From Macrostomum lignano (Eukaryota), in contig NIVC01001141.1 in assembly GCA_002269645.1 (NCBI GenBank), positions 127,711 to 191,710 of the forward strand: a stretch of 64,000 nucleotides of DNA. Direction: 5' to 3'. The position numbers and the translations under genes are program-made. The stretch's first letter is position 1; every line of letters starts with the position of its first letter. Below, in pieces: positions 5,652 through 50,861 of the stretch. The notes below the pieces were generated by a model, which ran no database searches, was not told the DNA's origin, and saw only the letters and a program-made list of their open reading frames with translations.

Positions 5652-8600
5652 CTAGGACTTCTTGAACCGCTTCAACTGGCGATTCGGCTTCAGCTGCGGG
5701 TCGATGACGGGCTTGGCGGGCAGCACGGCCGGGGCGGCGGACGGCACGTCATCGTCTGGGAGGCAGCGAGCTGGGGAGTCCCCAGAAACCCTGACTGCAC
5801 TGCGCCGGGTGGCCGTGAGCATTCGGCGGACCTGCTTGCCGCAGGTCATCTGCCACTCCTGCTCCACCCTGCTCTTGTCCAGGTTGCGGAACATCTTGCG
5901 AATCTCCTGCAGGTTGGCGCCCTCGGAAGGCGGTGGCCCAGCACGAAGATGGTGAGGTTGTTGCGCGGCTCGAAGACGCGGCCGTAGCCGTCCTGCACCG
6001 TGAAGCCGCCATTGTCAAGCGCAAACTTGTCAATGAGGTGCTTAGAGAGGCTGAGGCGCTCCCAGCTGGGGGCATCGTCCCACCTGGGGAAGGTGACGAA
6101 GAACCAGCAGTTCTCATCGCCAGTGTCCAGATAGTCCAAAATCCTTGAGGCCACCCGGTCCATCATGGCCTCGATGAAGGGTGGGTTCACATGCCAGCCG
6201 CCGTGGCACTTGGAGAAGTCCACCTTGAAGAAGCTGCCCATGCTGCCGAACTCCTCGTCAGTGTCGATGAAGAGGCTGCAGAAGCGAGAGTCCGCCTTGT
6301 CGATCATCTTGGAGTTCAGAGGAGACGCGAAGCCCTCGTACCGAACTCCCATGAGGTCATGCAGTGCATTGTGCACCGTGATGGGGTCGCCCCACTGCAG
6401 ACTGCCGGTGCCCAGCGCCTCGTACCTGATCAGCATCCTGGTGGCTGGCAGCAGTCCGAAGTTGCGCACCAGGAACTTCACCCGCCAGCAGTGCTTGGAC
6501 TTGAAGTCGCCCAGTGTCACGTGAGCTGCATCTTCGCTGTCCTCAATCAGCTCTATGCGGAGGTCGCTTGTGTCTTCGTCCCTGCCATCGTCCTTCAGGA
6601 ACTTGCGCAGTCGCTGCTCCAACTGACCAAAGATGGTCCTGGCGTTCTCCCTGTCCGAGCTGAACTTCTTCTCCACGCACTCGTCGATCAGCTTCTGGTT
6701 CACCGAGTCCTCCTCGCTCAGGCTTTGCGGAAACAGCGGGTAGCGCGAGTCCATGCTGCCATCGTAGTCCAGCTGGAAGGACAGCAGCCAGCGGTCCAGC
6801 ATGTTCTGCGCCTCCGAAAGGTTCTTATCCGCTGTGTGGTACATCCTGCCGTCTCCCTTCAGGAAGACGTCCACCAAGGAGCGGGCGAAGCGCCACTGCC
6901 GCAGCTCCGTCAGGTGCTTCTCTGTGGGCTCGGACTCATCAAGCAGTGGGGAATGCCTTCTTTTGAGTCTGTTCCGGAGATCCGCGGTGTTGCCCGTCTC
7001 ATGGCCGTCGGTCTTGGCAGCTCTGTGCCGGCTGGGCTTGAGGATTACACGGAGCTGCTTGCTGCAGGTCATCCGCCACTCCTCCTCCACCATGTGCCGG
7101 TTGAGGTTGCGGAACATCTTGCGAATCTCCTTTAGGTTGGCATCATCGGGCAGGCGGTTCCCCATCACGAAGATGGTGAGGTTGTTGCGGGGCACGAAGA
7201 TGCGGCCGTAGCAGTCCTGCACCGTGAAGCCGCCGTCGTCCAGCTCGATCTGGTCGATGCGGCGCTTGGAATCACTGAGACGCACCCAGCCGGGGGTGTC
7301 ATCCCACCTGGCGGATGTTTAGGCGATGGGAAAAAATACAATTTAGAGGTGTAAGAAAAAAAAGTTTCTGACGTAGATAAGAAATCCCCTTAGTGAGTTA
7401 GAAGCAATCAAATCCGATTTGACCATCGAATTCCTATCTAAATAAAATTCATTCGGCCGCAAGAAGGCTTCGACTTGGAGAAAAACTGAAGCAGACCAGC
7501 ACATTCCTCTACTAAAAGTAGCGAGGATCGGGTATAGACAGAATTTTGGCATGCTTTGAAATCTGCCATGAATGTTAACTAAGCAAAGGTCGCCACCTCA
7601 GAGATTTCTGAGCTAGAAGCGCACTTGCTTAGCTGTACTGTGTGGACAGGTCGCTCAAACTACGAGTACAGGTGTAAAACGAGTAAATTGGTAATTCCTA
7701 GTGCAATGCAGAGACAGCAATTTTTATTCCAGTATCTGAGATACACTGGTAATTTAACTGCATCAGTTTCACAGAGTCACTCCACTTCTAGCTCGTAAAT
7801 ACCCTCAGAATTTGCGCTTAATGTTGTGGAAGGAGAGCTCCCTTCAGGCCAAGAGACATCCCAACAATAGTGTCCCAGTTGTGGCTCTCAAATCCTGGGA
7901 TTATTGGGCGGCAGATCGTCCCGAATTAAGTGCTCAAATCCCAGGAGCAATAGCTGGGAAACGATCCCGAACAGAGTGCTTGAATCCCTGGATCAGTTGC
8001 TGGTGAGGATCCCAAAAAGGCTCAAATACCGGGATCAGTGGCTGGTAAGGATCCCAATTCCAAAATAGGCTTAAATACCGGGATCAGTGGCTGGTAAGGA
8101 TCCCAAATAGGCTTAAATACCAGGATCAGAGGCTGGTAAGGATCCCAAATAGGCTTAAACACCGGGATCAGTGGCTGGTGAGGATCCCAAATAGGCTCAA
8201 ATACCGGGATCAGTGGCTGGTAAAGATCCCAAATAGGCTCAAATACCGGGATCAGTGGCTGGTAAAGATCCCAAATAGGCTCAAATACCGGGATCAGTGG
8301 CTGGTGAGGATCCCAAATAGGCTCAAATACCGGGATCAGTGGCTGGTAAAGATCCCAAATAGGCTCAAATACCGGGATCAGTGGCTGGTAAAGATCCCAA
8401 ATAGGCTCAAATACCGGGATCAGTGGCTGGTAAGGATCCCAAATAGGCTTAAATACCGGGATCAGTGGCTGGTAAGGATCCCAAATAGGCTTAAATACCG
8501 GGATCAGTGGCTGGTAAGGATCCCAAATAGGCTTAAATACCGGGATCAGTGGCTGGTAAAGATCCCAAATAGGCTCAAATACCGGGATCAGTGGCTGGTA

Positions 8601-11600
8601 AGGATCCCAAATAGGCTTAAATACCGGGATCAGTGGCTGGTAAGGATCCCAAATAGGCTCAAATACCGGGATCAGTGGCTGGTGAGGATCCCAAATAGGC
8701 TCCAATACCGGGATCAGTGGCTGGGAGAGGATCCCAAATAGAGTGCTCAAATACCGGGATCAGTGGCTGGTGCGGATCCCAAATAGGCTCAAATACCGGG
8801 ATCGGTGGCTGATGAGGATTCTGAGTTGATCCGGGACTGCTAAGTATGATTAAAAAGGTTGCTGGTGGAACAAAACGCTGAGCGCTCTCAACAGTCGAAC
8901 CTGGGGAAGGTGACGAAGAACCAGCAGTTCTCATCGCCAGTGTCCAGGTAGTTCAGCACCTTGGTGGCCACCCGGTCCATGAGCTCCTCGATGAAGGGCG
9001 GGTTGACCGTCCATCCACCGTGGCACTTGGAGAAGTCCACCTTGAAGAAGCTGCCCATGCTGCCGAACTCCTCGTCAGTGTCGATGAAGAGGCTGCAGAA
9101 GCGAGAGTCCGCCTTGTCGATCATCTTGGAGTTCAGAGGAGACGCGAAGCCCTCGTACCGAACTCCCATGAGGTCATGCAGTGCATTGTGCACCGTGATG
9201 GGGTCGCCCCACTGCAGACTGCCGGTGCCCAGCGCCTCGTACCTGATCAGCATCCTGGTGGCTGGCAGCAGTCCGAAGTTGCGCACCAGGAACTTCACCC
9301 GCCAGCAGTGCTTGGACTTGAAGTCGCCCAGTGTCACGTGAGCTGCATCTTCGCTGTCCTCAATCAGCTCTATGCGGAGGTCGCTTGTGTCTTCGTCCCT
9401 GCCATCGTCCTTCAGGAACTTGCGCAGTCGCTGCTCCAACTGACCAAAGATGGTCCTGGCGTTCTCCCTGTCCGAGCTGAACTTCTTCTCCACGCACTCG
9501 TCGATCAGCTTCTGGTTCACCGAGTCCTCCTCGCTCAGGCTTTGCGGAAACAGCGGGTAGCGCGAGTCCATGCTGCCATCGTAGTCCAGCTGGAAGGACA
9601 GCAGCCAGCGGTCCAGCATGTTCTGCGCCTCCGAAAGGTTCTTATCCGCTGTGTGGTACATCCTGCCGTCTCCCTTCAGGAAGACGTCCACCAAGGAGCG
9701 GGCGAAGCGCCACTGCCGCAGCTCCGTCAGGTGCTTCTCTGTGGGCTCGGACTCATCAAGCAGTGGGGAATGCCTTCTTTTGAGTCTGTTCCGGAGATCC
9801 GCGGTGTTGCCCGTCTCATGGCCGTCGGTCTTGGCAGCTCTGTGCCGGCTGGGCTTGAGGATTACACGGAGCTGCTTGCTGCAGGTCATCCGCCACTCCT
9901 CCTCCACCATGTGCCGGTTGAGGTTGCGGAACATCTTGCGAATCTCCTTTAGGTTGGCATCATCGGGCAGGCGGTTCCCCATCACGAAGATGGTGAGGTT
10001 GTTGCGGGGCACGAAGATGCGGCCGTAGCAGTCCTGCACCGTGAAGCCGCCGTCGTCCAGCTCGATCTGGTCGATGCGGCGCTTGGAATCACTGAGACGC
10101 ACCCAGCCGGGGGTGTCATCCCACCTGGCGGATGTTTAGGCGATGGGAAAAAATACAATTTAGAGGTGTAAGAAAAAAAAGTTTCTGACGTAGATAAGAA
10201 ATCCCCTTAGTGAGTTAGAAGCAATCAAATCCGATTTGATCATCGAATTCCTATCTAAATAAAATTCATTCGGCCGCAAGAAGGCTTCGACTTGGAGAAA
10301 AACTGAAGCAGACCAGCACATTCCTCTACTAAAAGTAGCGAGGATCGGGTATAGACAGAATTTTGGCATGCTTTGAAATCTGCCATGAATGTTAACTAAG
10401 CAAAGGTCGCCACCTCAGAGATTTCTGAGCTAGAAGCGCACTTGCTTAGCTGTACTGTGTGGACAGGTCGCTCAAACTACGAGTACAGGTGTAAAACGAG
10501 TAAATTGGTAATTCCTAGTGCAATGCAGAGACAGCAATTTTTATTCCAGTATCTGAGATACACTGGTAATTTAACTGCATCAGTTTCACAGAGTCACTCC
10601 ACTTCTAGCTCGTAAATACCCTCAGAATTTGCGCTTAATGTTGTGGAAGGAGAGCTCCCTTCAGGCCAAGAGACATCCCAACAATAGTGTCCCAGTTGTG
10701 GCTCTCAAATCCTGGGATTATTGGGCGGCAGATCGTCCCGAATTAAGTGCTCAAATCCCAGGAGCAATAGCTGGGAAACGATCCCGAACAGAGTGCTTGA
10801 ATCCCTGGATCAGTTGCTGGTGAGGATCCCAAAAAGGCTCAAATACCGGGATCAGTGGCTGGTAAGGATCCCAATTCCAAAATAGGCTTAAATACCGGGA
10901 TCAGTGGCTGGTAAGGATCCCAAATAGGCTTAAATACCAGGATCAGAGGCTGGTAAGGATCCCAAACATACATGCGCAACAGTCGGCCGAGTCGGCCGAT
11001 CCGGCCGACTGATTTGGCAGCCAACCAAGGAAGTCGCAAAAAATGCCCACCCAAAAAATACCCACGCAGTAGTACTAAGTAGCTGACGAGGCATTTTTGC
11101 CTGATAAGACAGTCATAGTTACTCCCGCCGTTTACCCAAAGTTGCGTTAATTTTGCTTTAGGGTTTTTTTACATGTAAGTCGCATTTTTGGCCAAAAACT
11201 ACGTCGCATTTTTGTTAAAACTAAGTCGCACGGCCGACCGAATTTTGGACGTTGCGCATGTATGATCCCAAATAGGCTTAAACACCGGGATCAGTGGCTG
11301 GTGAGGATCCCAAATAGGCTCAAATACCGGGATCAGTGGCTGGTGAGGATCCCAAATAGGCTCAAATACCGGGATCAGTGGCTGGTAAAGATCCCAAATA
11401 GGCTCAAATACCGGGATCAGTGGCTGGTGAGGATCCCAAATAGGCTCAAATACCGGGATCAGTGGCTGGTAAGGATCCCAAATAGGCTCAAATACCGGGA
11501 TCAGTGGCTGGTAAAGATCCCAAATAGGCTCAAATACCGGGATCAGTGGCTGGTAAGGATCCCAAATAGGCTTAAATACCGGGATCAGTGGCTGGTAAGG

Positions 11601-12994
11601 ATCCCAAATAGGCTTAAATACCGGGATCAGTGGCTGGTAAAGATCCCAAATAGGCTCAAATACCGGGATCAGTGGCTGGTAAGGATCCCAAATAGGCTTA
11701 AATACCGGGATCAGTGGCTGGTGAGGATCCCAAATAGGCTCAAATACCGGGATCAGTGGCTGGTGAGGATCCCAAATAGGCTCAAATACCGGGATCAGTG
11801 GCTGGTAAGGATCCCAAATAGGCTCAAATACCGGGATCAGTGGCTGGTGAGGATCCCAAATAGGCTCCAATACCGGGATCAGTGGCTGGGAGAGGATCCC
11901 AAATAGAGTGCTCAAATACCGGGATCAGTGGCTGGTGCGGATCCCAAATAGGCTCAAATACCGGGATCGGTGGCTGATGAGGATTCTGAGTTGATCCGGG
12001 ACTGCTAAGTATGATTAAAAAGGTTGCTGGTGGAACAAAACGCTGAGCGCTCTCAACAGTCGAACCTGGGGAAGGTGACGAAGAACCAGCAGTTCTCATC
12101 GCCAGTGTCCAGGTAGTTCAGCACCTTGGTGGCCACCCGGTCCATGAGCTCCTCGATGAAGGGCGGGTTGACCGTCCATCCACCGTGGCACTTGGAGAAG
12201 TCCACCTTGAAGAAGCTGCCCATGCTGCCGAACTCCTCGTCAGTGTCGATGAAGAGGCTGCAGAAGCGAGAGTCCGCCTTGTCGATCATCTTGGAGTTCA
12301 GAGGAGACGCGAAGCCCTCGTACCGAACTCCCATGAGGTCATGCAGTGCATTGTGCACCGTGATGGGGTCGCCCCACTGCAGACTGCCGGTGCCCAGCGC
12401 CTCGTACCTGATCAGCATCCTGGTGGCTGGCAGCAGTCCGAAGTTGCGCACCAGGAACTTCACCCGCCAGCAGTGCTTGGACTTGAAGTCGCCCAGTGTC
12501 ACGTGAGCTGCATCTTCGCTGTCCTCAATCAGCTCTATGCGGAGGTCGCTTGTGTCTTCGTCCCTGCCATCGTCCTTCAGGAACTTGCGCAGTCGCTGCT
12601 CCAACTGACCAAAGATGGTCCTGGCGTTCTCCCTGTCCGAGCTGAACTTCTTCTCCACGCACTCGTCGATCAGCTTCTGGTTCACCGAGTCCTCCTCGCT
12701 CAGGCTTTGCGGAAACAGCGGGTAGCGCGAGTCCATGCTGCCATCGTAGTCCAGCTGGAAGGACAGCAGCCAGCGGTCCAGCATGTTCTGCGCCTCCGAA
12801 AGGTTCTTATCCGCTGTGTGGTACATCCTGCCGTCTCCCTTCAGGAAGACGTCCACCAAGGAGCGGGCGAAGCGCCACTGCCGCAGCTCCGTCAGGTGCT
12901 TCTCTGTGGGCTCGGCTGACTTGACGCTGGGCTCGGACTCATCAAGCAGTGGCTGGCGCTTTAGTTTGAGTTTGTCTCTGAGATCGGTGGCCAT
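5652..12994 (-). CDS. PCIF1/CAPAM-like N6-adenosine methyltransferase with three tandem catalytic units, about 1,269 aa; exons 12994-12066, 10124-8901, 7307-5652
   Basis: Each unit has the PCIF1-family motifs RYE..LQ, EGFASPLN, FCSLF.DTD..FGS.GSF and NPPF. Both introns are phase-2 GT-AG and join in frame (FPR^WDD). One apparent 1-nt deletion near 5927. No WW domain seen. Confidence 0.85.
8005..8830. repeat. Intronic minisatellite, 42-bp unit (GGATCCCAAATAGGCTCAAATACCGGGATCAGTGGCTGGTAA), intron 2 of the PCIF1-like gene
   Basis: Direct periodicity; the same unit recurs in intron 1. Confidence 0.95.
10822..11985. repeat. Intronic 42-bp minisatellite, intron 1 of the PCIF1-like gene, interrupted by a MITE
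   Basis: Same unit and flanks as 8005-8830, but with a different copy number. Confidence 0.95.
10967..11264. mobile_element. hAT-type MITE, 298 bp
   Basis: 14-bp TIRs CATACATGCGCAAC/GTTGCGCATGTATG and 8-bp TSD ATCCCAAA. A second copy lies at 24182-24480. Confidence 0.9.
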
Positions 12995-13617
12995 TTGCTT
13001 GAGACGATGATGTCAGAGTTTTATTCAGCTTTCTGACTCGCTTTTTAATTTAAAACGTAAAACAGAAAACAAATTATCTGCTAAATCCGGAAGCCTCAGT
13101 TTTCATTTTTCGTTTTCATTCTTGTCGTTGCTTGCCTTCTTCCTTTAATAGGTTCAATGTACAAGCCAGGCCCTACCCTCAGCCCTGTCAGCCTCTCACT
13201 GCTGGCCCGCGGGGAGAGAAATGAAGCCCAATGCCTCGACTCTTTTTAGAAACCCCCTTGCCCGTGCACAAATGTACACTCTGCCCTGCGTCAATGTACA
13301 TTATTTTCCCTGTCCCCCGCCTTCCCAGCGCTAAATGACTGTACACACAGAAAGAACGCCTCTCTCCACAGCCTGACTCGCTAGACAAAGCCTTAGAAGT
13401 AAAGCCAACTAACCTTACATTCAGCAGGGGCCTGTCTTCTGCTCAAGAACTACTAATACTGAATACTCGTATATACAAATACAAGCTATAGTAGGGCTCC
13501 AACCAACTAAAGAGAAGTTTCTATCTATCGAGTTAAAGCAAAATATAAATATTTAAAATCTAAAGCAAAATCAAATAATAAATATTTCACTTTGCGGCTT
13601 CTAATCCAACCAAAAGT

Positions 13618-13662: not shown

Positions 13663-13787
13663 CCAAAAGTACTTCAGATTTAATAAATGAGTTTGTTTGC
13701 GAAACATTCTAGTGCCTTTATGATCGAACGGTGCAAGTTTCATGAAAATCTTTTGAGCCTTTTAAAAAATAAGTTTAGTACATGCAC

Positions 13788-14394
13788 TTGGGAGCCAGTC
13801 CACTGAAGCACTGGGGAGCCAGTCCACTGAAGCACTGGGGAGCCAGTCCACTGAAGCACTGGGGAGCCAGTCCACTGAAGCACTGGGGAGCCAGTCCACT
13901 GAAGCACTGGGGAGCCAGTCCACTGAAGCACTGGGGAGCCAGTCCACTGAAGCACTGGGGAGCCAGTCCACTGAAGCACTGGGGAGCCAGTCCACTGAAG
14001 CACTGGGGAGCCAGTCCACTGAAGCACTGGGGAGCCAGTCCACTGAAGCACTGGGGAGCCAGTCCACTGAAGCACTGGGGAGCCAGTCCACTGAAGCACT
14101 GGGGAGCCAGTCCACTGAAGCACTGGGGAGCCAGTCCACTGAAGCACTGGGGAGCCAGTCCACTGAAGCACTGGGGAGCCAGTCCACTGAAGCACTGGGG
14201 AGCCAGTCCACTGAAGCACTGGGGAGCCAGTCCACTGAAGCACTGGGGAGCCAGTCCACTGAAGCACTGGGGAGCCAGTCCACTGAAGCACTGGGGAGCC
14301 AGTCCACTGAAGCACTGGGGAGCCAGTCCACTGAAGCACTGGGGAGCCAGTCCACTGAAGCACTGGGGAGCCAGTCCACTGAAGCACTGGGGAG
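13788..14394. repeat. Highly homogeneous 24-bp minisatellite (GGGAGCCAGTCCACTGAAGCACTG), about 25 copies
   Basis: Units appear identical by eye, with no spacers. Confidence 0.95.
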
Positions 14395-15221
14395 ACGGCC
14401 CCTCTGAAGTCCCGGAATCCAGCCCACCGAAGTCCATTGTGAAGCAATGATAACTATCTGGAGTTTAAGATTCCTCTCAGTGCCATGTTAAAATATCTGG
14501 GCCAGTTCTACAAAGCCATCGTAACATAAGATTGTTCTTATTTCCGCAGTGTAAAAGTTCCGACGAACGATCGAACTTACGCTACGACAGCTTTATAGTG
14601 GACCCCTCCGAGTGTAGAGTGAATGAGTTAAGAGAAGTCGCCGCTCGCTAGAGGTGCTACATTTGACTCTTCCATGTGCATATTCGTAGCTGTAATTGCA
14701 TTATGTGACCGCATAATGTCTGCCTGTTGGGTTCTAATAAGTTCACAAAGTACCTGCCAAAAAGCGCAGCAAAAACCACATAAACCCAGCAACGAGAACG
14801 CATTCCATTAATTATTGGCTCAGGTATGATTGTCCAGGAAGCCACACTAGATATTCTGTCAAGTAGTAAAGCTGATCAGTTGCAGAGCTCTCACAGAGGC
14901 GCCAGCAACTCCGAGTTTATTTCGATATGATTAATAATTAATGCACAGTTACAGCCATACAATTCATTTTTACTAGCTGAAAATGCCGAATAAAGCAGAG
15001 CAAAGCGAAGGAATCTGGGAGAAGCAGGTCAGCGCCAAAGGCATGCACCTGCCTATAACTAACTATAAGAACAAGCGGTGCAAATATCAGCCCCAGTTAT
15101 ACATTGTGGGCCGTCACAGGTAAACCAAAATCGTCAACCGAATGCAGCCGGTAAGACAAAAACATACAATTGCTGAACAGACGCAATAAAGGAGGATCAG
15201 CACCGGTCAGACAGCAGCCAG

Positions 15222-16811
15222 TCAGTTGCCATGCTGGGCGAAGAACTCCCTGGCCGCGGCGCACCTGGGATTTGTGCACAGCGGGCAGCGCAGCTGGAAC
15301 TGCGAGCTGACGGTGCAGCCCTCGGCCAGGTGCTGCAGCACCAGGTCGGCCAGCGCAGACACGAAGGTCGGACTGTCGTTGAGAGCCTCGGAGCGGAGGA
15401 CGCGGGCGCCGAGGTCGCCGGCCAGTTTGCCTGCGTATTCGACGTCCAGCTCGTACAGCGTCTCGATGTGGTCGCTGGTGAAGGCGATGGGCACCAGAAC
15501 CAGCTGGTCGCGGCCGCGCTTCACCAGGCCGCGGATGGCCTCCTCCGTGCTGGGGCCCAGCCAGGGCAGCGGACCCACCTTGGACTGCCAGACCAGCCGG
15601 TACGGCACGCTGCCGGGGCCCAGCGCCTGCGCCACCATATGGGCGGTGACGGCCACCTCAGCCGGGTACGGGTCGCCCCGGTTCACCACCGACATGGGCA
15701 GCGAGTGGGCGGAGATCAGCAGCGCGCAGCGGGCCCGTTCCTCCGGCCCCAGCCTATCCAGCTCTGGCCGAACCCGCTCGGCCACGGCGGCCACGAAGCC
15801 AGCGTGCGCCGGCCAGCGGTCGATGAGCGACCAGCGCTGAATGCTGCTGGCCCCGCTGCGCTTGCGGTAGTACGCGGCCAGCGCGTTGAAGGAGCTGCCG
15901 CTGGTGCTGCAGGAGTACTGCGGGTACTGTGAGAAGGCGATCGCGTGCTGCACGCCGTCCCGCTCCATCGCCTCCACGGCGTCCTCCAGCAGCGGCCGGG
16001 CGTAGCGGAAGCCAACGTAGTGGCGATGCGGCGCCGATCCCGGGCTCAGCCGGTCCAGCTGAGCCGTCATGGCGCGGCCCTGCGGGTTTGGGGATAATTC
16101 TCCCATGGTCAGCTTTCATGGCTGGTCAGCTCCTACGAAGTCTGACATGCTGGAAAGTTATTTACGATACATATCGGCACCCGAACAGTGATATATAAGA
16201 GAGATCGCTTACTGAAGAGAAGCAAGGAAACAATTTGAAGCGAATCTCTTATAGGGTGTGCAAAAGGTTGCGCACTGATGGATAAACAGAAATTTGACGC
16301 GTGTGTCTTTGAGCTGGCAAAGAGAACTCAGACACTGGTCCTGGCCAATCGTGAGTCCGAGTCTCGCACTTGGACACATGCAGAAGCTCATATGTGGAAT
16401 GCCAAGCCAGTATCGCTAGAAAATTTGCATCCACTCACCGAATACTAAGATTGAAGCTAAACAAAAGCTAAAACTGTCCCCTGAGCGGGGACTCACCTGA
16501 GCCTCAGTCCACTTGAGGATTGGGCTGCCGCCGCCAATGCGGTAGTACTGCTCCCTGATGGCCGGGGTGCGCCTCCTGGCGATGTACTTAGACAGCCGAG
16601 ACTGTGCGGGCAGCGGGATCAAGTCCCCGTCACTGAACAGGCGGTGCAGAAAGTCGCCAACATCGTCCAGTGTCTCCGGCCCGCCCATGTTCAGCATGAG
16701 GATGCCGGTCTTGGGAGGCTGCGCGCCGCCGCTGGTGGAGCTGAGAAGACGGCGGCCAGAGGCGGTCAGACGGGCCAGCCGCCCAGAGGACAGCAGCGGC
16801 AGCAGCGGCAT
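15222..16811 (-). CDS. FECH: Ferrochelatase, mitochondrial, about 390 aa; exons 16811-16497 and 16079-15222
   Basis: Motifs [60 protein letters not shown] and [13 protein letters not shown]. Phase-0 GT-AG intron; Arg/Ser-rich transit-like N-terminus. Confidence 0.97.
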
Positions 16812-17077
16812 AGGAAGAGGCTGCGGAGCGATCGAACAGACTACTGCTAGTAGGGAGTAAAAGTTATTGAAGTTAAATTCTAAGAACAAAAAGCAGAAAA
16901 TTAACAAGAACAAAAAATAAAAAGCGAAACAACAGAAAATTGTTCTAGCAGCAAAGGTCTGCACGCAGAAAATGCAGTGTAGGGTGCATTTTATTGGTAG
17001 AACAAGCTAGCAATCAATGATAACACATTAGGCTGCAAAGTAACTGGGCTGTTGCCAGTGAAGCTACAAATTAAAAG

Positions 17078-18546
17078 TCAAAACTCGGCAGCCAGCAGCC
17101 GCAGCTTCTTCAGCAGCCGCCTGTCCGGGACGCGGCCGGGCAGCGAGTCCGCGTCCACCCACTTCCAGCTGCCCGAGGCCTCTGCGCTGCGCCAGTCGGC
17201 ACCGGTGAAGATGGCCCGGTGCAGGAACAGGGAAACTGGGGATTTCTTGTACTTGTACGTGTGCAGGCCGACTGGCGCGTTGCCTAGCAACCGGCAGCTG
17301 GCGGTCAGCCCCATCAGCTCCAGTAGGCGGTCGCAGGCGGCTCGAAGGCTGGCGTCGCCGTCAACAACTGGGCAGCAGGGGAGGCAGAGGTCAGCATCCG
17401 TGCTGAGCAGCACGGCTGGCCGCTTCAGGCTGGGGTCGGCGGCCTCCCTGTGGTGGAGAGAATGCGGAGTAGCTACTGTGAGTAGTGAGAGCGGACTGCA
17501 GCTGACCTAGCTGTGCAAACAGCTACTGTGAGTAGTGAGAGCGGACTGCAGCTGACCTAGCTGTGCAAACAGCTACTGTGAGTAGTGAGAGCGGACTGCA
17601 GCTGACCTAGCTGTGCAAACAGCTACTGTGAGTAGTGAGAGCGGACTGCAGCTGACCTAGCTGTGCAAACAGCTACTGTGAGTAGTGAGAGCGGACTGCA
17701 GCTGACCTAGCTGTGCAAACAGCTACTGTGAGTAGTGAGAGCGGACTGCAGCTGACCTAGCTGTGCAAACAGCTACTGTGAGTAGTGAGAGCGGACTGCA
17801 GCTGACCTAGCTGTGCAAACAGCTACTGTGAGTAGTGAGAGCGGACTGCAGCTGACCTAGCTGTGCAAACAGCTACTGTGAGTAGTGAGAGCGGACTGCA
17901 GCTGACCTAGCTGTGCAAACAGCTACTGTGAGTAGTGAGAGCGGACTGCAGCTGACCTAGCTGTGCAAACAGCTACTGTGAGTAGTGAGAGCGGACTGCA
18001 GCTGACCTAGCTGTGCAAACAGCTACTGTGAGTAGTGAGAGCGGACTGCAGCTGACCTAGCTGTGCAAACAGCTACTGTGAGTAGTGAGAGCGGACTGCA
18101 ACTGACCTAGCTGTGCAAACAGCTACTGTGAGTAGCGAGAGTGGCTATGCAATACAATTAAAGCATTAAGTGAAACCGACAGCACACCTGGAGGCCAGAG
18201 TGACTGCCTGTTGCTCAGCAGCCCACCGCTGCATCAGGTCCTTGGCGGTAATTACGGCGCCGTCCCTGGCCACCTGGACTTTGCCCTCCGCGGCTGCGCT
18301 GAGGCTCCGCTTGGCTGCCTCCGACTCGGCGCGGTCGCGCAGCTCAAAGTCGGACAGGCGGCTGCGCTCAAAGTCCAGCCGGGTGAAGAGGTCCGAGGCT
18401 CGAGTCTCCAGTTCAGTGAGGTCAGGCGTGAGCACAGCTTTGCGCTGGATGAGCAGGCCAACGCTGAGCAGCCGGCCAGACCGGGTGAGGCCCGGAGTGG
18501 CGGCTGAGCCCGATCGCCACAGGGCAGCCACAGCGGCTGATGTAGC
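17078..18546 (-). CDS. MRPL46: Mitochondrial ribosomal protein L46 (mL46); exons 18546-18188 and 17447-17078; no genomic ATG found
   Basis: GLLIQRKAVLTPDLTELE, FERSRLSDFELR, AKDLMQRW and LLGNAPVGLHTYKY match the mL46 pattern as I recall it. The phase-2 intron joins in frame. Confidence 0.85.
17471..18135. repeat. 50-bp minisatellite, 13 near-identical copies, filling the MRPL46 intron
   Basis: Exact 50-bp period. Confidence 0.95.
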
Positions 18547-18581
18547 CTGCGGATGGCGGGGGACTGGGATGCAGATCCTGG

Positions 18582-18790
18582 GTGCTGATCCCACTATAGG
18601 GTGCTGATCCCACTATGGGATGCTGATCCCACTATGAGGTGCTGATCCCACTATGAGGTGCTGATCCCACTATGAGGTGCTGATCCCACTATGAGGTGCT
18701 GATCCCACTATGGGATGCTGATCCCACTATGAGGTGCTGATCCCACTATGGGGTGCTGATCCCACTATGGGGTGCTGATCCCACTATGGG
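18582..18790. repeat. 19-bp minisatellite (GGTGCTGATCCCACTATGA) upstream of the MRPL46 acceptor
   Basis: Direct periodicity. Confidence 0.9.
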
Positions 18791-19503
18791 TTGTTGCTCG
18801 CACAGAAGTGCCAGATCCTACTTAGACTGCACAGTCAATGGATAACGCGGTGCCCAAGGTTTTATACCAAAACAGAAGTAACTCAGAGCTGAGGAAGCAA
18901 GCTGAACCCGAGCTAAAAACCACCTGCCGCACCAAAATGATTTACAAGGCAGCGGCAAAAAACAGCCCAGTGAGTTTCGAATCGCGAGGAAAAATAACAA
19001 GACAGCGATCGGACAGTTTATTTGATTAGATTGAGTACAGATAGCAGTGCCAGTTGCAGCAGTCGGACCGCAAAGTCAACCAGCCTCAACACAGAAGTCC
19101 CAATAGGTCCCAGCACAGCGTGCAATTGTCAATGCAGTGCGAGCCCGCTGCATCAGTGGGCGCGCTGGGCAACAACTGCAGCACAGGGCTGCGCAGGGCA
19201 CAAGCAAAGGTCCGCGGGACTCGCTTGAGAAAAATTGTCACAATTAGAAAGAGAAAAACGGCTGCTTCAAACAAATAATGAATCAGAATTAGATCGGACA
19301 ATAAAGCTGCTCAATAAGTGCGGGCTCATTGATTCTAGTGAAACTTGCTAAACACTAACAGTCAAAGCTTGCATATCTAATCTGAAATAGTTAAGTACTT
19401 AGCATGCAGCGCAGAGTAGCAAGGTACCTATTAGACAAATTTCTGCTTCAATAAAAAGTTCCAGAGTTTGCAGACGAGACTCCAGATGAGCTGCGCCGGT
19501 GCC

Positions 19504-22500
19504 TCACACAGCACCCTCAGCCTTGCCCTGGTGCAGGCTCACGTAGTAGTCGTGAAAGTACATGATGATGGCGAGAGGCTGTCCGATGATGAGGCTGAGC
19601 CACACCGCCATGTTGCCGAGCTGACCGCCTCGGAGAACCCGACTGACGAACATGGCGAACGGAACCTGCGGGTGGGGAGTGACCTGCTCAGCTGCCCATC
19701 TGCAGGAGTGACCTGCTCAGCTGCCCATCTGCAGGAGTGACCTGCTCAGCTGCCCATCTGCAGGAGTGACCAGCAGTGGGATCGGTGGGACTAGTACACT
19801 GGGACCAGCACACTGGGATCAGAACTGAGATCAGTAGGACCAGCACACTGGGACCAGCACACTGGGACCAGCACACTGGGACCAGCACACTGGGACCAGC
19901 ACACTGGGACCAGCACACTGGGACCAGCACACTGGGACCAGCACACTGGGACCAGCACACTGGGACCAGCACACTGGGACCAGCACACTGGGACCAGCAC
20001 ACTGGGACCAGCACACTGGGACCAGCACACTGGGACCAGCACACTGGGACCAGCACACTTGGACCAATACAGGGATCAGTGGGACTTGTACACTGGGACC
20101 AGCAGTGGGATCGGTGGGACTAGTACACTGGGACCAGCACAGGAATCAGTGAGACTAGTACACTGGGACCAGCGGTGGGATCGGTGGGACCAGCACATTG
20201 GGACCAGCACAGGGATCAGCCCTGTCCCGCGCACCTGCATAATCATGGCCAGGAAAGCCCAGAGCCGGAACATGCGCAGCGGCACGGATACCAGCAGCTC
20301 GTGGAAGAAGGCGGACACGGCGAAGACCACAACAGAGGCCAGCAGCTTGTTGAAGCCCCAGCGGTGGATCAGCGGAGTGAAGATGTGCCGCTTGGCAAAG
20401 CGGTGAACGGGCACATTCCAGAGCGTCCAGAACTCGGTGACGCTCTCGCTGTTCCACCAGTCCTTGTAGAAGTTGCGGTCGCCAAACAGCGTCAGCTCCC
20501 CGGCCACGTTCAGCGCGGAGTGGAAGAACACGTAGAAGAAGATCAGCCAGATGAGGTGGTTGGGGATGGCCAGCTTCAGCAGCCGCTCCAGCACCACCGG
20601 CCATTCCGAGGCCTGCAGCGGCTTCACGGAGTTGTTCAGGATCGGAATGATCCACTGCTGCGTCAGGCCCGCCATCACCTGCGGATGCGAGGCGTAGCTG
20701 GCCTGCTGACACTGCGTGACTGGCATCTGATCTGACTGCATAGCTGTGCCTGACTCATCTGATCTGACTGCATAGCTGTGCCTGACTCATCTGATCTGAC
20801 ACTGCATAGCTGTGCCTGACTCATCTGATCTGACTGCATAGCTGTGCCTGACTCATCTGATCTGACTGCATAGCTGTGCCTGACTCATCTGATCTGACAC
20901 TGCATAGCTGTGCCTGACTCATCTGATCTGACACTGCATAGCTGTGCCTGATTCATCTGATCTGACACTGCATAGCTGTGCCTGACTCATCTGATCTGAC
21001 ACTGCATAGCTGTGCCTGACTCATCTGATCTGACACTGCATAGCTGTGCCTGACTCATCTGATCTGACACTGCATAGCTGTGCCTGACTCATCTGATTTA
21101 ATCTGACACTACGAAAGCGACTGCACAATTGTGCCTGACTTGACTGACACTGAGTGACACCGACTCATTTGATCTGACATTGCGCGACTGAGTGACTTAT
21201 GTGGTCTGACACTGCATTGCTGACACCTGCTGCCCGGCTTACCTGCGGCAGGAACACGAGTTCCAGACATCGCTTGACCAAGAATCGCTTCCGAATTCGC
21301 ATCAGCCTGGGAAAGTTGAGCTCATAGCAGAGAGTCGGCGTCATCATGAAGTAGTACAGGTTGCCCAGAGTCAGGTTCTCCGGGTAGCACAGCAGGGAGG
21401 ACCGGCTGGAGGACCCCCTGGCCAGCCGCAGCCGCTCGCTGCCGCCGTCCCCGTCGGCCCCAGCCTCCGTGAGCACGGAGGCGATGCTCTTGTTCCGCTT
21501 GAGCTCTGAGCGCTTGTTGAGCTGCAGTTGGCGCTCCAGACGGCACCAGGAGTTCATGTCCCGGTAGGACCACAGCTTCAGGAACACGATGGAGTAAATG
21601 CCCAGGGTTGGCGCGCTGAAGACTGCAAAGAGGGAGGCGAACACGTCTATGACCCCCAGAGCACAGGGCAGGTCTAATACCCCCAGAGCACAAGGCAGGT
21701 CTAATACCCCCAGAGCACAGGGCAGGTCTAATACCCCCAGAGCACAAGGCAGGTCTAATACCCCCAGAGCACAAGGCAGGTCTAATACCCCCAGAGCACA
21801 AAGCAGGTCTAATACCCCCAGAGCACAAGGCAGGTCTAATACCCCCAGAGCACAAGGCAGGTCTAATACCCCCAAAGCACAAGGCAGGTCTAATACCCCC
21901 AGAGCACAAGGCAGGTCTAATACCCCCAGAGCACAAGGCAGGTCTAATACCCCCAGAGCACAAGGCAGGTCTAATACCCCCAGAGCACAAGGCAGGTCTA
22001 ATACCCCCAGAGCACAAGGCAGGTCTAATACCCCCACAGCACAAGGCAGGTCTAATACCCCCAGAGCACAAGGCAGGTCTAATACCCCCAAAGCACAAGG
22101 CAGGTCTAATACCCCCAGAGCACAAGGCAGGTCTAATACCCCCAGAGCACAAGGCAGGTCTAATACCCCCAAAGCACAAGGCAGGTCTAATACCCCCAGA
22201 GCACAAGGCAGGTCTAATACCCCCAGAGCACAAGGCAGGTCTAATACCCCCAGAGCACAAGGCAGTCTAATACCCCCAGAGCACAAGGCAGGTCTAATAC
22301 CCCCAGAGCACAAGGCAGGTCTAAGACCCCACTGCACAAGGCAGATCTAATACCCCAGATCTCAAGGCAGGACTAATACCCCCACAGCACAAGGCAGGTC
22401 TAAGACCCCACTGCACAAGGCAGGTCTAATACCCCAGATCTCAAGGCAGGACTAATACCCCCACAGCACAAGGCAAGTCTAATACCCCACTGCACAGGGC

Positions 22501-23915
22501 AGGTCTAATACCCCCACAGCACAAGGCAAGTCTAATACCCACAGCACAGGGCAGGTCTATAGCCCCCAGACAGCCGCAGCTCACATGGATTCGGGTGGTC
22601 TCTCAGAATGAGGTAGGACGGCACGAGGAGCAGGGCGGCCAGATTGCCCACCTGCAGACAGGAGAGGGCGGGCGACACCAGCCGGAAATTCTCCGCCAGC
22701 AGCTCGAGGCCGAAGGCGATGAAGATGAAGATGTTGCACATGAGCAGCAGGCAGATGCACGGCCACTGGCCAGGCGAGGACAGGAAGATCTCGATGGGCC
22801 TGACCGGGTCCACCAGGATGCCGTACTTGATTATGTTTTCCAGCGCCACCCGGAAGTTCGACACCACCAGCAGGATGAGGCCCAGGTTCAGCAGGCCGCG
22901 GAAGTTGTTGAAGCCGCTCGAAGAGGAGAACGGGCTGTCAACCAGGCTGTGCAACCTGCGAATGTATGGGGAAAATGCAGAGCATATATCCAATCTGAGC
23001 TATTCTATATCCAATCTGACCTATTCTATATCCAATCTGACCTATTCTATATCCAATCTGACCTATTCTATATCCAATCTGACCGATTCTACATCCAATC
23101 TGACCTATTCTATATCCAATCTGACCGATTCTATATCCAATCTGACCTATTCTATATCCAATCTGACCGATTCTACATCCAATCTGACCTATTCTATATC
23201 CAATCTGACCTATTCTATATCCAATCTGACCTATTCTATATCCAATCTGACCTATTCTATATCCAATCTGACCGATTCTACATCCAATCTGACCTATTCT
23301 ATATCCAATCTGACCTATTCTATATCTAATCTGACCTATTCTATATCCAATCTGACCGATTCTATATCCAATCTGACCTATTCTATATCCAATCTGACCT
23401 ATTCTATATCCAATCTGACCTATTCTATATCCAATCTGACCGATTCTACATCCAATCTGACCTATTCTATATCCAATCTGACCGATTCTATATCCAATCT
23501 GACCTATTCTATATCCAATCTGACCGATTCTATATCCAATCTGACCTATTCTATATCCAATCTGACCGATTTTACATCCAATCTGACCTATTCTATATCC
23601 AATCTGACCTATTCTATATCCAATCTGACCGATTCTACATCCAATCTGATCCATTATGTTTCAATAGACCGAGATAGGTTATATTTATCCCAAATATAAA
23701 TCTGGATGCACCACTCACGGCTTATCGGGCGCCATCTCCTTGATTGCCCGCTCCAGAGTCTCCATGTCCTCCAGGCGGTTCAGGCTGCTGCTGCGCGGCA
23801 GGCGCCGCTTCGACTCGGAGGTCGCCACCGTGGCGCCTTGGTCAGCAAGCGCGGAATCATCTTTGGCGCCACCCTTGGCGCCAATGCCAGCTGATCGCCT
23901 GCGAGCCTCGGACAT
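19504..23915 (-). CDS. DGAT1: Diacylglycerol O-acyltransferase 1 (MBOAT), about 517 aa; exons 23915-23719, 22955-22585, 21622-21243, 20678-20235, 19665-19504
   Basis: Motifs DSPFSSSSGFNNFRG, FLKLWSYRD, PTLCYELNFPR, AIPNHLIWL, FGDRNFYKDWWN, SAFFHE and IIGQP. Exon lengths sum to 1,554 nt with consistent phases. Confidence 0.96.
19678..20215. repeat. DGAT1 intron 4: short 29-bp array plus 14-bp array (GGGACCAGCACACT)
   Basis: Direct periodicity. Confidence 0.9.
20725..21110. repeat. DGAT1 intron 3: 32/34-bp minisatellite
   Basis: Direct periodicity (CTGATCTGAC[AC]TGCATAGCTGTGCCTGACTCAT). Confidence 0.92.
21653..22560. repeat. DGAT1 intron 2: 27-bp minisatellite (CCCCCAGAGCACAAGGCAGGTCTAATA)
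   Basis: Direct periodicity. Confidence 0.95.
22985..23650. repeat. DGAT1 intron 1: 21-bp minisatellite (ATATCCAATCTGACCTATTCT)
   Basis: Direct periodicity. Confidence 0.95.
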
Positions 23916-24024
23916 GGCAGAGTGCTCAGTTACAGAGGCCAGGCCGGCCTGGTCTGGAAGCAGGTTTTAGATAGATTATAATTTTCAATATGCGATGCAA
24001 AACAATCAAAGCGCTATATTTACT

Positions 24025-25005
24025 GGGAGCACGAGAAATGCCTGCGGACGAATTTCCTGCCGAGATTTGCCCGTCGGGATTTGCCCGCCGAGCTTTTCCC
24101 ACAGTGCATTTTGCCCGTGAGCGAATTGCCCACCGAGGTTTGCCCGCAGTGCATTTTTCCTACAGCGCATTTGGCCACGCGCATACATGCGCAACAGTCG
24201 GCCGAGTCGGCCGATCCGGCCGACTGATTTGGTGACCAACCAAGGAAGTCGCAAAAATGCCCACCCGAAAAAATACCTAAGTAGTAGTACTAAGTAGCTG
24301 ACGAGGCATTTTGGGTTAATAAGACAGTCATAGTTACTCCTGCCGTTTACCCAAAGTTGCGTTAATTTTGCTTTAGGCTTTTTTTTACATGTAAGTCGCA
24401 TTTCTGGCCAAAAACTATGTCGCATTTTTGTTAAAACTAAGTCGCACGGCCGACCGAATTTTGGAGGTTGCGCATGTATGGCCACGCGGCAGATTTTGTC
24501 TGCATTGCCTCCCCCAATGCTTAGTAAGTCTTAATAAAGAGATTTACACGATCAAATGTTTTGATGGTAGCTGCATATCAAATGCATATTAAGTTTTATT
24601 ATTAATTTTTATTATTAATAATCTACATATTATTCATTTTTTTGGGGGGAGGGGGCATTGCAGACAGAATCTAGCTGCCAAATGCGCTGCAGGAAAAAAA
24701 GCATTGCGGGCAAATCTCCACGGGCAAAATGCACTGCTGGCAAATCTCGGCGGGCAAAATGCACTGCTGGCAAATCTCGGCGGGCAAAGCTCCACGGGCA
24801 AAATGCACTTCTGGCAAATCTTGGTGGGCAAAGCTCCACAGGCAAAATGCACTGCTGGAAAATCTTGGCGGGCAAATCTCCATGGGCAAAATGCACTGCT
24901 GGCAAATCTTGGCGGGCAAATCTACACGGGCAAAATGCACTGCTGGCAAATCTCGGTGGGCAAAGCTCGGCGGGCAATTCATCTGTGGGCAATTCTCATG
25001 GACCC
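24025..25005. mobile_element. Foldback-type non-autonomous DNA element with long inverted arms made of sub-repeats
   Basis: GGG...CCC termini. The left arm (TTTGCCCGCCGAG units) is the reverse complement of the right arm (GGCGGGCAAA units). Flanks are ATATTTACT/ATATTTACC, a 9-bp TSD with one mismatch. Confidence 0.75.
24182..24480. mobile_element. hAT-type MITE nested in the foldback element
   Basis: Same 14-bp TIRs as 10967-11264; 8-bp TSD GCCACGCG. Confidence 0.9.
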
Positions 25006-49622: not shown

Positions 49623-50861
49623 AAAGGGGCGCCAAATCAGTGGGCAGTAAAGTTTTGAGAGCCTATGTAGAACAATACATAACCCTTAAATTGCATCCGA
49701 TGAGCTTATATGACGTAAAAATTCGCCTCCGAAGAGCTTTCATTTGAAAGTTATGTCTTCCTTTCGCATACTAGCTGCATGGTGTCAAGAAATTCTGGCC
49801 TTAGTATAGGCCATAGTGCTCAATGTTGACGCACTCTTAGGACCACTCAGAATACTCGTATTTTACTATAAGATGCAATAATAGTCGAAGTCGAAGACGA
49901 TAGTTAATAGACAACGATTTTATGTTATATTTGCAGATATTTTCTGAACTTCTGAACTAAATTCAAACAAAACGCAGCCAAACTTTATGGATTCAAAAGT
50001 TTAAGAGTTTGTAACGGAATTTTCACTTTGGGGCTTTTCATACGAGCGTATTACCAATTCCAGAATCAGAATCGGTTCGGATCTTCCAAGAAAAACAGCA
50101 GTATAACTATTTAATTCTGTTGAATGTTTGACTGCCTTAACAACCTCACTTTGCACAATTTTTCACTTTCTTCTTGGCGATTGTCATTCAATAATAAAAA
50201 CTTTATAGCACATATCTCCCTCTAGTTATGGAGACAAAAAGTTATACTTCACAAATTGGTTCTGGTTCTGGAACCAGAACAAGCAATATGAAAAGGCCCT
50301 AGGTACGGTCTAACGCGGCGCGGCAGCTCAGCTCGCCGTGCTCCCGTCTAAACGCCATAATTTTAGTTGCTGTATTACCGACTAGACGGTCGTCAATAGG
50401 CTGAGCTAGGGCCTGCGCAAGTAGAAGAATTGGAAACTATGTTTCTTGGAAAATTTTGAATTTAGGAGGCCAGGTTTTTTTCAAAAAAATACATTACAGA
50501 AACAGGTTTTCATTTTTATAGGGCCTAGCTCTATTGATATTTTCTATACTATGCCTAAAAAAATAAAATGCATGGCATAGCTTTACTCATCATTTTTATA
50601 AATCTATTTATCTTTTCTATCTGTTATATAATATTGTTATAGTCAACTAGAGCCTCAGGCTAAGAATTATAAAATTGATTCATGAGATGAAACCAATGAG
50701 CCAAGCTTTTTTATTTTTTTGGTTTCAAGGCTATCAAGACTATAATACTATAGGCCTATAAATTATAAGTGCAATATATATTTAATAAAAAATAATTTTT
50801 TAAACAAAAAGCTTTTTAGAAAGTAATAGAACTAGAACTATAAAAAGGCAAATTATCTCAA

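Follow-up and report, generated by a model that had tools for sequence, protein, structure and literature searches.

DGAT1, mL46 and ferrochelatase as a probable spliced-leader-resolved operon of Macrostomum lignano

Three head-to-tail genes and their public annotation

The window analyzed here is a stretch of 64,000 nucleotides from Macrostomum lignano, and its positions 9504-33951 agree with the GenBank contig NIVC01001141.1 (assembly Mlig_3_7) without a single mismatch in 24,448 nt. On the minus strand of this region the genes for DGAT1 (23915-19504), mL46 (MRPL46; 18546-17078) and ferrochelatase (FECH; 16811-15222) follow each other head to tail, being consecutive and having no opposite-strand gene between them in our own models as well as in the GenBank calls. 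The initial annotation had described three co-oriented housekeeping genes here, and the gene models bear this description out, with every item lying at, or at most one base away from, the position it had given.

The first gene, DGAT1, runs from an ATG at 23915-23913 to a stop codon at 19506-19504 in five GT-AG exons (23915-23719, 22955-22585, 21622-21243, 20678-20235 and 19665-19504) and codes for 517 amino acids including the Pfam domain MBOAT (3.5e-36); its database match (PAA71762.1, BOX15_Mlig014809g1) is 100%. The GenBank coding sequence (529 aa) starts at 23951, where a transcript with 23953 as its first base would have its first in-frame codon. Directly before this 5' end stands cttccag (23954-23960, minus strand), which fits the [T/C]TNCAG motif (PMC8629364) and is either a candidate spliced-leader acceptor with 23953 as the first exon base or part of an initiator-like CCAGACC. 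A TATAAT is found at 23980-23975, 22-27 nt upstream of CCAGACC, and the 10 kb upstream of DGAT1 are without an annotated gene in the GenBank calls for the same contig.

The second gene, mL46, occupies 18546-17078 of the minus strand in two exons (18546-18188 and 17447-17078) with its stop codon at 17080-17078, and its entry in GenBank is marked partial (PAA71761.1, Mlig014809g2). The protein carries the Pfam domain MRP-L46 (5.8e-5), and its closest relatives in the full-database search were flatworm mL46 proteins. In the case of FECH (16820-15222, minus strand; PAA71760.1, Mlig014809g3), the exons are 16820-16497 and 16079-15222, and the genomic ATG at 16811 opens a frame of 390 amino acids with the Pfam domain Ferrochelatase (2.7e-101).

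GenBank names these genes BOX15_Mlig014809 g1, g2 and g3 under consecutive accessions (PAA71762, PAA71761 and PAA71760), and a single unit prefix covers all three in every annotated contig, this being Mlig014809 here and Mlig000493 on three paralogous contigs. In this naming scheme the prefix denotes a transcriptional unit assembled from RNA-seq, and the TBONE pipeline splits such units into genes at the peaks of leader-containing and poly(A) reads, that is, at experimental trans-splice and poly(A) sites (PMC5730564). Sequence-unrelated proteins can share a prefix only if they have been cut from one transcriptional unit, and by this reading of the naming scheme Mlig014809 g1-g3 are three genes cut from one such unit. 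The 5'-partial coding sequences of mL46 and FECH on NIVC01001141.1 begin 18 nt (mL46) and 3 nt (FECH) into the exon rather than exactly at the acceptor, while on the paralogous contig NIVC01001140.1 those of mL46 (242 aa, 'ATSAAV...') and FECH (393 aa, 'PLPM...') start exactly at the acceptors. No mention of Mlig014809 or Mlig000493 was found in the papers and supplements searched; the unit exists as annotation only. The three-gene unit is already part of the public annotation and is ordinary for M. lignano.

Spacers, acceptors and the start codon of mL46

Between 14500 and 24500 of the minus strand AATAAA occurs only three times, once after each of the three stop codons: at 19022-19017, about 480 nt after that of DGAT1, at 16995-16990, 82 nt after that of mL46, and at 14921-14916, 300 nt after that of FECH, the last being the likely 3' end of the three-gene unit. 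A PCIF1-like gene follows further downstream, with its coding sequence from 12994. The first two signals had been listed in the initial annotation and were recovered on the minus strand, and the gene models also reproduced the 267 nt that it had given between the MRPL46 stop and the FECH ATG.

The intercistronic region between DGAT1 and mL46 (19016-18547, minus strand) measures 470 nt, is devoid of ATG and ends in the acceptor catccgcag followed by GCT, with its AG at 18548-18547. A minisatellite of 11 copies of a 19-bp unit (18580-18790, 211 nt) lies in this spacer, leaving 259 nt without it, and is expanded in the paralogous copies. The region between mL46 and FECH (16989-16821, minus strand) is 169 nt long and ends in cgctccgcag followed by CCT (AG at 16822-16821). 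At 44% T and 37% GC it agrees with the earlier observation of a U-rich tract before the FECH acceptor at 16821, and the paralogous copies match it at 98.4% identity. Two of the three acceptors (CCGCAG) are without the T that the published motif for trans-acceptors, [T/C]TNCAG, calls for. A search of the window for a leader RNA gene gave nothing that matched the M. lignano leader, no ATG/GTRAG...Sm-site pattern and no Rfam family, and a scan for bacterial promoters and terminators, which is irrelevant to a eukaryote, remained at or below shuffled expectation.

The reading frame of mL46 is open for 242 codons from the first base past the acceptor, codon 1 being GCT. The sequence between 19153 and the first in-frame ATG of mL46, at codon 104, was free of ATG, so that mL46 has no genomic start codon; the 22 in-frame codons upstream of the exon likewise held no ATG before a stop. 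The stretch homologous to other mL46 proteins begins near residue 28, and all seven homologues in the alignment start with Met, five of them upstream of this stretch and the two shortest models at or within it. Residues 1-41 include four Arg, one Lys and no acidic residue. For the acceptor at 18547 no good cis donor was found, and the only candidates for an upstream exon with an ATG were ATG-to-GT stretches that fall within the DGAT1 3'UTR and whose donors depart from the consensus, in keeping with the initial annotation, which had called this acceptor unpaired.

The published leader of M. lignano, CGGTCTCTTACTGCGAAGACTCAATTTATTGCATG, whose 3' part is ...CAATTTATTGCATG (PMC8629364), ends in AUG (...TTGCATG), and its final ATG is considered a translation start (PMC10468722). 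Because the mL46 acceptor is in frame, the AUG that ends the leader would start the mL46 protein, and no in-frame genomic AUG lies upstream of the conserved domain. Judging from the sequence, the leader appears to supply the start codon of the middle gene of the unit. The FECH acceptor is also in frame with its open reading frame, to which the leader AUG would add M-P-L-P. On balance we lean toward a reading in which mL46 has entirely lost its genomic start codon and is translatable only after trans-splicing, many GenBank coding sequences of M. lignano that are labeled 5'-partial and begin at trans-splice acceptors are complete but for the leader Met, and FECH bears the M-P-L-P extension.

Probable transcription of the three genes as one unit and its alternatives

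Operons in M. lignano have been defined operationally as adjacent co-oriented genes with a repeat-adjusted spacing below 1 kb and a trans-spliced downstream gene (PMC8629364). The distances from AATAAA to acceptor at this locus, 470 nt (259 nt after adjustment for repeats) and 169 nt, both lie under this limit. Trans-splicing of the downstream genes is indicated indirectly, by 5'-partial GenBank coding sequences that start at the acceptors and by the missing genomic start codon of mL46. The three genes probably share a transcript that spliced-leader trans-splicing divides, and we consider it probable that DGAT1-mL46-FECH constitutes a spliced-leader-resolved operon of M. lignano, the unit Mlig014809. 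The proposal of one trans-spliced operon, made in the initial annotation, hence gains support from the single prefix of g1-g3 and from coding sequences whose annotated starts coincide with the acceptors named there or follow them by a few bases. We infer that the shared prefix reflects a common precursor RNA, that exactly these bases receive the leader and that a single promoter serves the unit.

Under this model RNA polymerase II would start upstream of or at 23954 and would include DGAT1, mL46 and ferrochelatase in one precursor, which would be cleaved and polyadenylated after the AATAAA at 19017, 16990 and 14916. The 35-nt leader (...TTGCATG) would be trans-spliced between 18547 and 18546 and between 16821 and 16820, and possibly between 23954 and 23953, supplying a cap to each downstream cistron. 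Its AUG, as the sole initiator available to mL46, would give M-ATSAAVAALWRSG..., a typical mitochondrial presequence, and on the FECH mRNA it would place M-P-L-P ahead of the genomic Met.

Alternatively, the genes could be closely packed but under independent promoters, or make up a 'hybrid' operon, mL46 and/or FECH having promoters in the spacers, short outrons and individual trans-splicing, and the shared unit would then be a merging of read-through transcripts during assembly. We regard this as unlikely. A transcript assembler may merge neighbors through read-through or across short gaps, and a shared unit is therefore no proof of a single promoter; internal promoters are known in the operons of C. 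elegans. The statement of the initial annotation that there is little room for separate promoters was too strong, as the first spacer offers 470 nt with a consensus TATAAAA at 18866-18860, some 320 nt before the mL46 acceptor, and an A in partial initiator context follows 27 nt downstream, at 18839. This motif and the TATAAT upstream of DGAT1 were the only promoter leads. TATAAA has however a density of 0.34 per kb per strand in the window, so that one occurrence in 470 nt is unremarkable, and the second spacer is just 169 nt long, U-rich and without a TATA-like hexamer. Only about 40% of the trans-spliced genes of M. lignano lie in operons, which would suit individual trans-splicing, but the spacings at this locus match the mode that operons form in the published distribution (PMC8629364), and one unit prefix recurs in each annotated contig, both under Mlig014809 and under Mlig000493 on the three paralogous contigs.

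It is highly improbable that the locus consists of three conventional genes with no trans-splicing, the acceptors pairing with unrecognized 5' exons and mL46 starting in an ATG exon missed by the annotation or at a codon other than AUG. The first exon of mL46 does contain the near-cognate codons GTG (codon 6) and CTG (codon 9), and the DGAT1 3'UTR offers ATG-to-GT candidates, for example the ATG at 19153 with the donor GTTGAG. Every such upstream exon would nevertheless fall inside the DGAT1 3'UTR and use a non-consensus donor, the 470 nt before the mL46 acceptor have no ATG, and the models of the annotation based on leader reads stop at these acceptors and are labeled 5'-partial. At least 30% of M. 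lignano genes are trans-spliced and 70% of the trans-spliced genes are conserved, as these are, which fits trans-splicing. Still less credible is a single gene for a DGAT1-mL46-ferrochelatase fusion protein: the UniProt entries A0A1I8G7S7 (1156 aa) and A0A1I8G984 (1143 aa) do join the three open reading frames in frame, and a GT at 19509-19508 (GCT/gtgtga) could be spliced to the acceptor 18547 with the frame kept, but every frame is closed by a stop codon with an AATAAA behind it, the second junction would depend on a 19-nt micro-exon (17063-17045) with donors (GA/gttttg and CCA/gttact) unlike the six real donors of the locus, the later annotation, for which leader and poly(A) reads were used, separates the genes, an enzyme of the ER membrane (DGAT1) would be tied to two mitochondrial proteins, and no other organism among the homology-search matches has such a protein.

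Comparison with known operons and consequences for databases

The spliced-leader-resolved operon proposed here shares species and assembly contig with the operons published for M. lignano (Ustyantsev & Berezikov 2021, PMC8629364; Mlig_3_7 annotation, Wudarski et al. 2017, PMC5730564), and Mlig014809 shows no essential difference from them. As in those operons, adjacent genes are co-oriented, the downstream ones start at AG acceptors, and a minisatellite inflates one of the spacers (PMC8629364). The repeat-adjusted spacing of about 170-260 nt compares with about 100 nt for the mode of the published distances and a cut-off of 1 kb, 18% of the published operons also have three genes, and the unit consists of conserved housekeeping genes, a class to which trans-spliced genes of M. 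lignano typically belong (PMC8629364). About 15% of the genes of this species are located in operons.

The SL2 operons of C. elegans (general knowledge and the summary in PMC8629364) resemble the proposed operon in their U-rich spacers of about 100-400 nt from AAUAAA to acceptor, in the coupling of 3'-end formation to downstream trans-splicing and in consisting mostly of housekeeping genes. In contrast to C. elegans, M. lignano has a single leader rather than one reserved for operons, the flatworm leader has a terminal AUG from which translation can start, and the introns and spacers of the locus carry minisatellites. A parallel to mL46 is offered by Schistosoma mansoni, another flatworm whose leader ends in AUG and is joined in frame to an open reading frame without its own initiator. 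As cited in PMC9851317 (its reference 8), a 2006 study counted more than 40 S. mansoni cDNAs that require a leader-donated AUG and, as quoted there, an in-frame leader AUG in 28% of those transcripts that are trans-spliced. Species and genes differ between the two cases, and the evidence is from genomic sequence and annotation for mL46 whereas it is from cDNA for S. mansoni.

The order DGAT1-mL46-FECH was not found in the trematodes examined, where mL46 adjoins a ribose-5-phosphate isomerase gene (in Trichobilharzia only) and a Methyltransf_5 gene. Gene order is therefore not conserved in trematodes and gives no support to an ancient operon. As a weaker extension of the operon reading, the grouping of the mitochondrial mL46 and FECH with DGAT1 might represent selected co-regulation and not chance.

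As a discovery the operon carries little weight, since operon genes are common in M. lignano and this unit already stands in GenBank. Its value is rather that of a worked example, in which trans-splicing becomes visible from the genomic letters alone because mL46 lacks its own start codon. If the leader does supply that codon, synthesis of the mitoribosomal protein mL46 would be obligatorily coupled to leader addition, and M. lignano coding sequences recorded as partial can be complete once the leader AUG is added.

Exact-protein look-ups gave no match for a PCIF1-like open reading frame, for the Dicrocoelium mL46 or for two candidate leader-started forms of an Aldolase_II gene. Homology searches with mL46 and FECH returned no protein of the same species, which is an artifact of clustering: the M. 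lignano mL46 and FECH are hidden under a DGAT1 representative because the 1156-aa chimeras pull three proteins into one 90% cluster. The chimeric UniProt entries, labeled ferrochelatase, fuse three unrelated proteins and in this way distort protein clustering.

Gene models and processing signals

Gene models built by hand from GT-AG boundaries, and then checked via translation, placed three genes on the minus strand of a eukaryotic region: DGAT1 (exons 23915-23719, 22955-22585, 21622-21243, 20678-20235 and 19665-19504; 517 aa; Pfam MBOAT, 3.5e-36), the mitoribosomal mL46 or MRPL46 (exons 18546-18188 and 17447-17078; Pfam MRP-L46, 5.8e-5, above the curated cut-off) and ferrochelatase, FECH (exons 16811-16497 and 16079-15222; 390 aa; Pfam Ferrochelatase, 2.7e-101). 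In the homology searches, the closest relatives of mL46 were from trematodes and cestodes, with Dicrocoelium first (39% identity, E 6.5e-19), followed by Trichobilharzia, Paragonimus and Hymenolepis. The six genuine donors of these models read gtgagt, gtgagc, gtaagc, gtgcgc, gtgtgc and gtgagt. Between 17471 and 23649, minisatellites, each one different (units of 14-50 bp, 11-35 copies, 92-99% identity), make up most of five of the six introns and of the DGAT1-mL46 spacer, the FECH intron alone being free of them.

The initial annotation had proposed that these genes form a trans-spliced operon, and its coordinates, rechecked on our gene models, were each correct within one base. The poly(A) signals AATAAA lie at 19022-19017 and 16995-16990, the acceptor AGs at 18548-18547 and 16822-16821, the mL46 stop is 267 nt from the FECH ATG, and the tract before the FECH acceptor described as U-rich has 44% T across 169 nt. 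Only three AATAAA motifs occur on the minus strand in 14500-24500, one past each of the three stop codons, that following FECH being at 14921-14916. From poly(A) signal to acceptor the mL46-FECH spacer measures 169 nt and the DGAT1-mL46 spacer 470 nt, or 259 nt after removal of its minisatellite (18580-18790, 11 copies of 19 bp).

The start codon of mL46

The mL46 coding frame is uninterrupted starting with the base that follows the acceptor (GCT ACA TCA ...), and its earliest in-frame ATG is codon 104. Homology begins at about residue 28, according to Pfam and to a full HMMER search against 1.8 billion representative proteins. All seven homologues in the alignment begin with Met; five have it upstream of the 'GLCI.RP.V.TP.LT.LE' block, and the two shortest of the models have it at or within that block. 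Residues 1-41 of mL46 hold four Arg, one Lys and no acidic residue, a composition which, judged from the predicted protein, is as expected of a mitochondrial presequence. No ATG is present throughout the 470 nt from the DGAT1 AATAAA to the mL46 acceptor, and the frame 5' of the acceptor runs back 22 codons to a stop without any ATG. The description of the acceptor at 18547 as unpaired also held, as the ATG-to-GT candidates for an upstream exon all fall within the DGAT1 3'UTR, with donor sequences that resemble none of the genuine ones of the locus. With no usable ATG in the genomic sequence, the start codon would therefore have to come from outside the gene.

The spliced leaders of flatworms terminate in AUG (PMC9851317). 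In M. lignano the leader is CGGTCTCTTACTGCGAAGACTCAATTTATTGCATG (PMC8629364), whose last ATG is considered to initiate translation (PMC10468722). Joined at 18546, the leader would give ATG|GCT..., that is M-A-T-S-A-A-V for mL46. The FECH acceptor would be in frame too, with ATG|CCT CTT CCT ATG giving M-P-L-P-M-P-L-L. We infer that mL46 depends on the leader AUG, a phenomenon known in flatworms. This need would explain the 'partial' tag on its coding sequence in GenBank, and many other M. lignano coding sequences so tagged are probably partial for the same reason.

A class II aldolase/adducin-domain gene (57238-58104, minus strand; Pfam 3.3e-38) lacks an in-frame ATG upstream of its domain. An ORF of presequence-like character begins, in a different frame, with the ATG at 58085, and in-frame AG acceptors lie at 58003|58002 and 57973|57972. 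On its sequence, this gene may be a second case of a leader-donated start codon or may reflect a 1-nt assembly error; the two candidate leader-started products had no exact match in a protein look-up.

Public annotation, probable operon structure and alternatives

In GenBank, the locus lies on the Macrostomum lignano contig NIVC01001141.1 (191,710 bp; assembly GCA_002269645.1, Mlig_3_7), whose bases 137214-161661 match window 33951-9504 (minus strand) at every one of 24,448 nt. There, BOX15_Mlig014809 g1 (PAA71762.1, DGAT1, 529 aa), g2 (PAA71761.1, mL46, 236 aa) and g3 (PAA71760.1, FECH, 392 aa) are each identical to our model over its length. Their coding ranges are 23951-19504, 18528-17078 and 16817-15222 in the window, and all three are tagged 5'-partial, the ORF continuing without a stop as far as the mRNA model extends 5'. 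For mL46 and FECH the annotated coding sequence starts 18 and 3 nt, respectively, inside the exon on this contig, and directly at the first base past the acceptor ('ATSAAV...' and 'PLPM...') on the paralogous contig NIVC01001140.1, a pattern expected of cutting at trans-splice sites. The TBONE pipeline split transcriptional units assembled from RNA-seq into genes at peaks of leader reads and poly(A) reads, and the cluster prefix names the unit (PMC5730564, Wudarski et al. 2017). By this naming rule, the Mlig014809 prefix on three proteins unrelated in sequence would mean that they were cut from one unit. As the 10 kb preceding DGAT1 contain no annotated gene, DGAT1 would be the first cistron.

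In M. lignano 30% of genes are trans-spliced, conserved genes making up 70% of these, and about 15% are in operons, called where co-oriented neighbours lie less than 1 kb apart (repeats subtracted) and the downstream gene is trans-spliced; spacing has its mode at about 100 nt, spacers are often inflated by repeats, three-gene operons make up 18% of the total, and in 18% the first gene is not trans-spliced (PMC8629364, Ustyantsev & Berezikov 2021). By gene orientation and spacing, the locus fits this class as an ordinary member. The signals, the spacings, the missing mL46 ATG and the shared unit annotation support the operon proposal: we predict with high confidence that the leader is trans-spliced at both the mL46 and FECH acceptors, and a true polycistron transcribed from a single promoter is probable. 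The system is not new, because the published genome annotation already has the locus in this form. This gene order was not found in the two trematode species looked at, in both of which mL46 adjoins a Methyltransf_5 gene and, in Trichobilharzia, also a ribose-5-phosphate isomerase gene; nothing therefore points to an operon of ancient origin.

An internal promoter in the DGAT1-mL46 spacer, making the operon a 'hybrid' one, is possible. A consensus TATAAAA lies at 18866-18860 on the minus strand, some 320 nt ahead of the mL46 acceptor, and assemblers can merge neighbours via read-through, so that membership of one unit is no proof that there is only one promoter; however, TATAAA occurs at 0.34 per kb per strand in the window, which makes this element weak evidence. 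We regard as gene-prediction artefacts, of a kind commonly provoked by operons, the in-frame DGAT1-mL46-FECH fusions of UniProt A0A1I8G7S7 (1156 aa) and A0A1I8G984 (1143 aa; both M. lignano 'Ferrochelatase, mitochondrial'), which would imply a single gene but whose joins (GT 19509-19508, one codon ahead of the stop, onto the 18547 acceptor; and a 19-nt micro-exon, 17063-17045, with donors GA|gttttg and CCA|gttact) are unlike the six genuine donors, each ORF having its own stop and AATAAA. Homology searches with mL46 and FECH returned no same-species match, because these chimeras pull the three proteins into one 90% cluster, in which DGAT1 represents three families that are unrelated.

Concerning the 5' end of DGAT1, a leader acceptor fits the annotated 5' end slightly better than a conventional transcription start. 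The candidate, cttccag|ACC at 23954|23953, agrees with the published [T/C]TNCAG motif, and the GenBank coding sequence in both copies holds 12 codons ahead of the ATG, starting where a transcript from 23953 would have its first in-frame codon. A conventional start could draw on TATAAT at 23980-23975 and on an initiator-like CCAGACC with its A at 23955. A leader joined at 23953 would open an 8-codon uORF (23930-23953, minus strand; M-T-R-P-A-W-P-L-stop, TAA 23932-23930) ending 14 nt before the DGAT1 ATG; at mL46 and FECH, by contrast, the leader AUG would be in frame.

Paralogous copies and neighbouring features

Paralogous genes carry Mlig000493 names, among them g2 (mL46, 242 aa), g3 (FECH, 393 aa), g5, g7 and g8; PAA48745.1 (BOX15_Mlig000493g7), listed at 100% identity in the DGAT1 search, differs from the DGAT1 model by a single residue, I11T, when the two are compared residue by residue. 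The minisatellite of the DGAT1-mL46 spacer is longer in these copies, its expansion taking the distance from DGAT1 stop to acceptor from 957 to about 1558 nt, and the mL46-FECH spacer keeps its 257 nt from stop to acceptor at 98.4% identity. Array lengths vary among paralogs, the DGAT1 gene spanning 4.4 kb in the window versus 9.8 kb on NIVC01004070.1. In the operon copy on that contig (21332-24000), a gap of 1 nt interrupts exon 1 of mL46, mL46 is not called as a gene, and the FECH model is frameshifted and shortened to 239 aa. Either decay of the duplicate or indels in the assembly would account for this.

Downstream on the minus strand, a gene similar to the cap adenosine methyltransferase PCIF1 (5846-13012; PCIF1_WW 8.9e-30, NPPF motif present) consists of a unit of about 3.0-3.2 kb present in three in-frame tandem copies, each with one long exon and a minisatellite-filled intron (8022-8750, 11199-11915). 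GenBank gives it as a single 1204-aa protein from 12994, with a 1283-aa version on a paralogous contig. Its coding sequence begins about 1.9 kb from the FECH AATAAA, or 1.3 kb after subtraction of the minisatellite 13784-14394, so that by the 1-kb rule the gene is probably outside the Mlig014809 unit. On the plus strand, in a retroelement remnant (50844-51919), a weak GIY-YIG nuclease domain (Pfam 4.9e-4) comes after a YIDD motif of reverse transcriptase, an architecture similar to that of Penelope-like elements.
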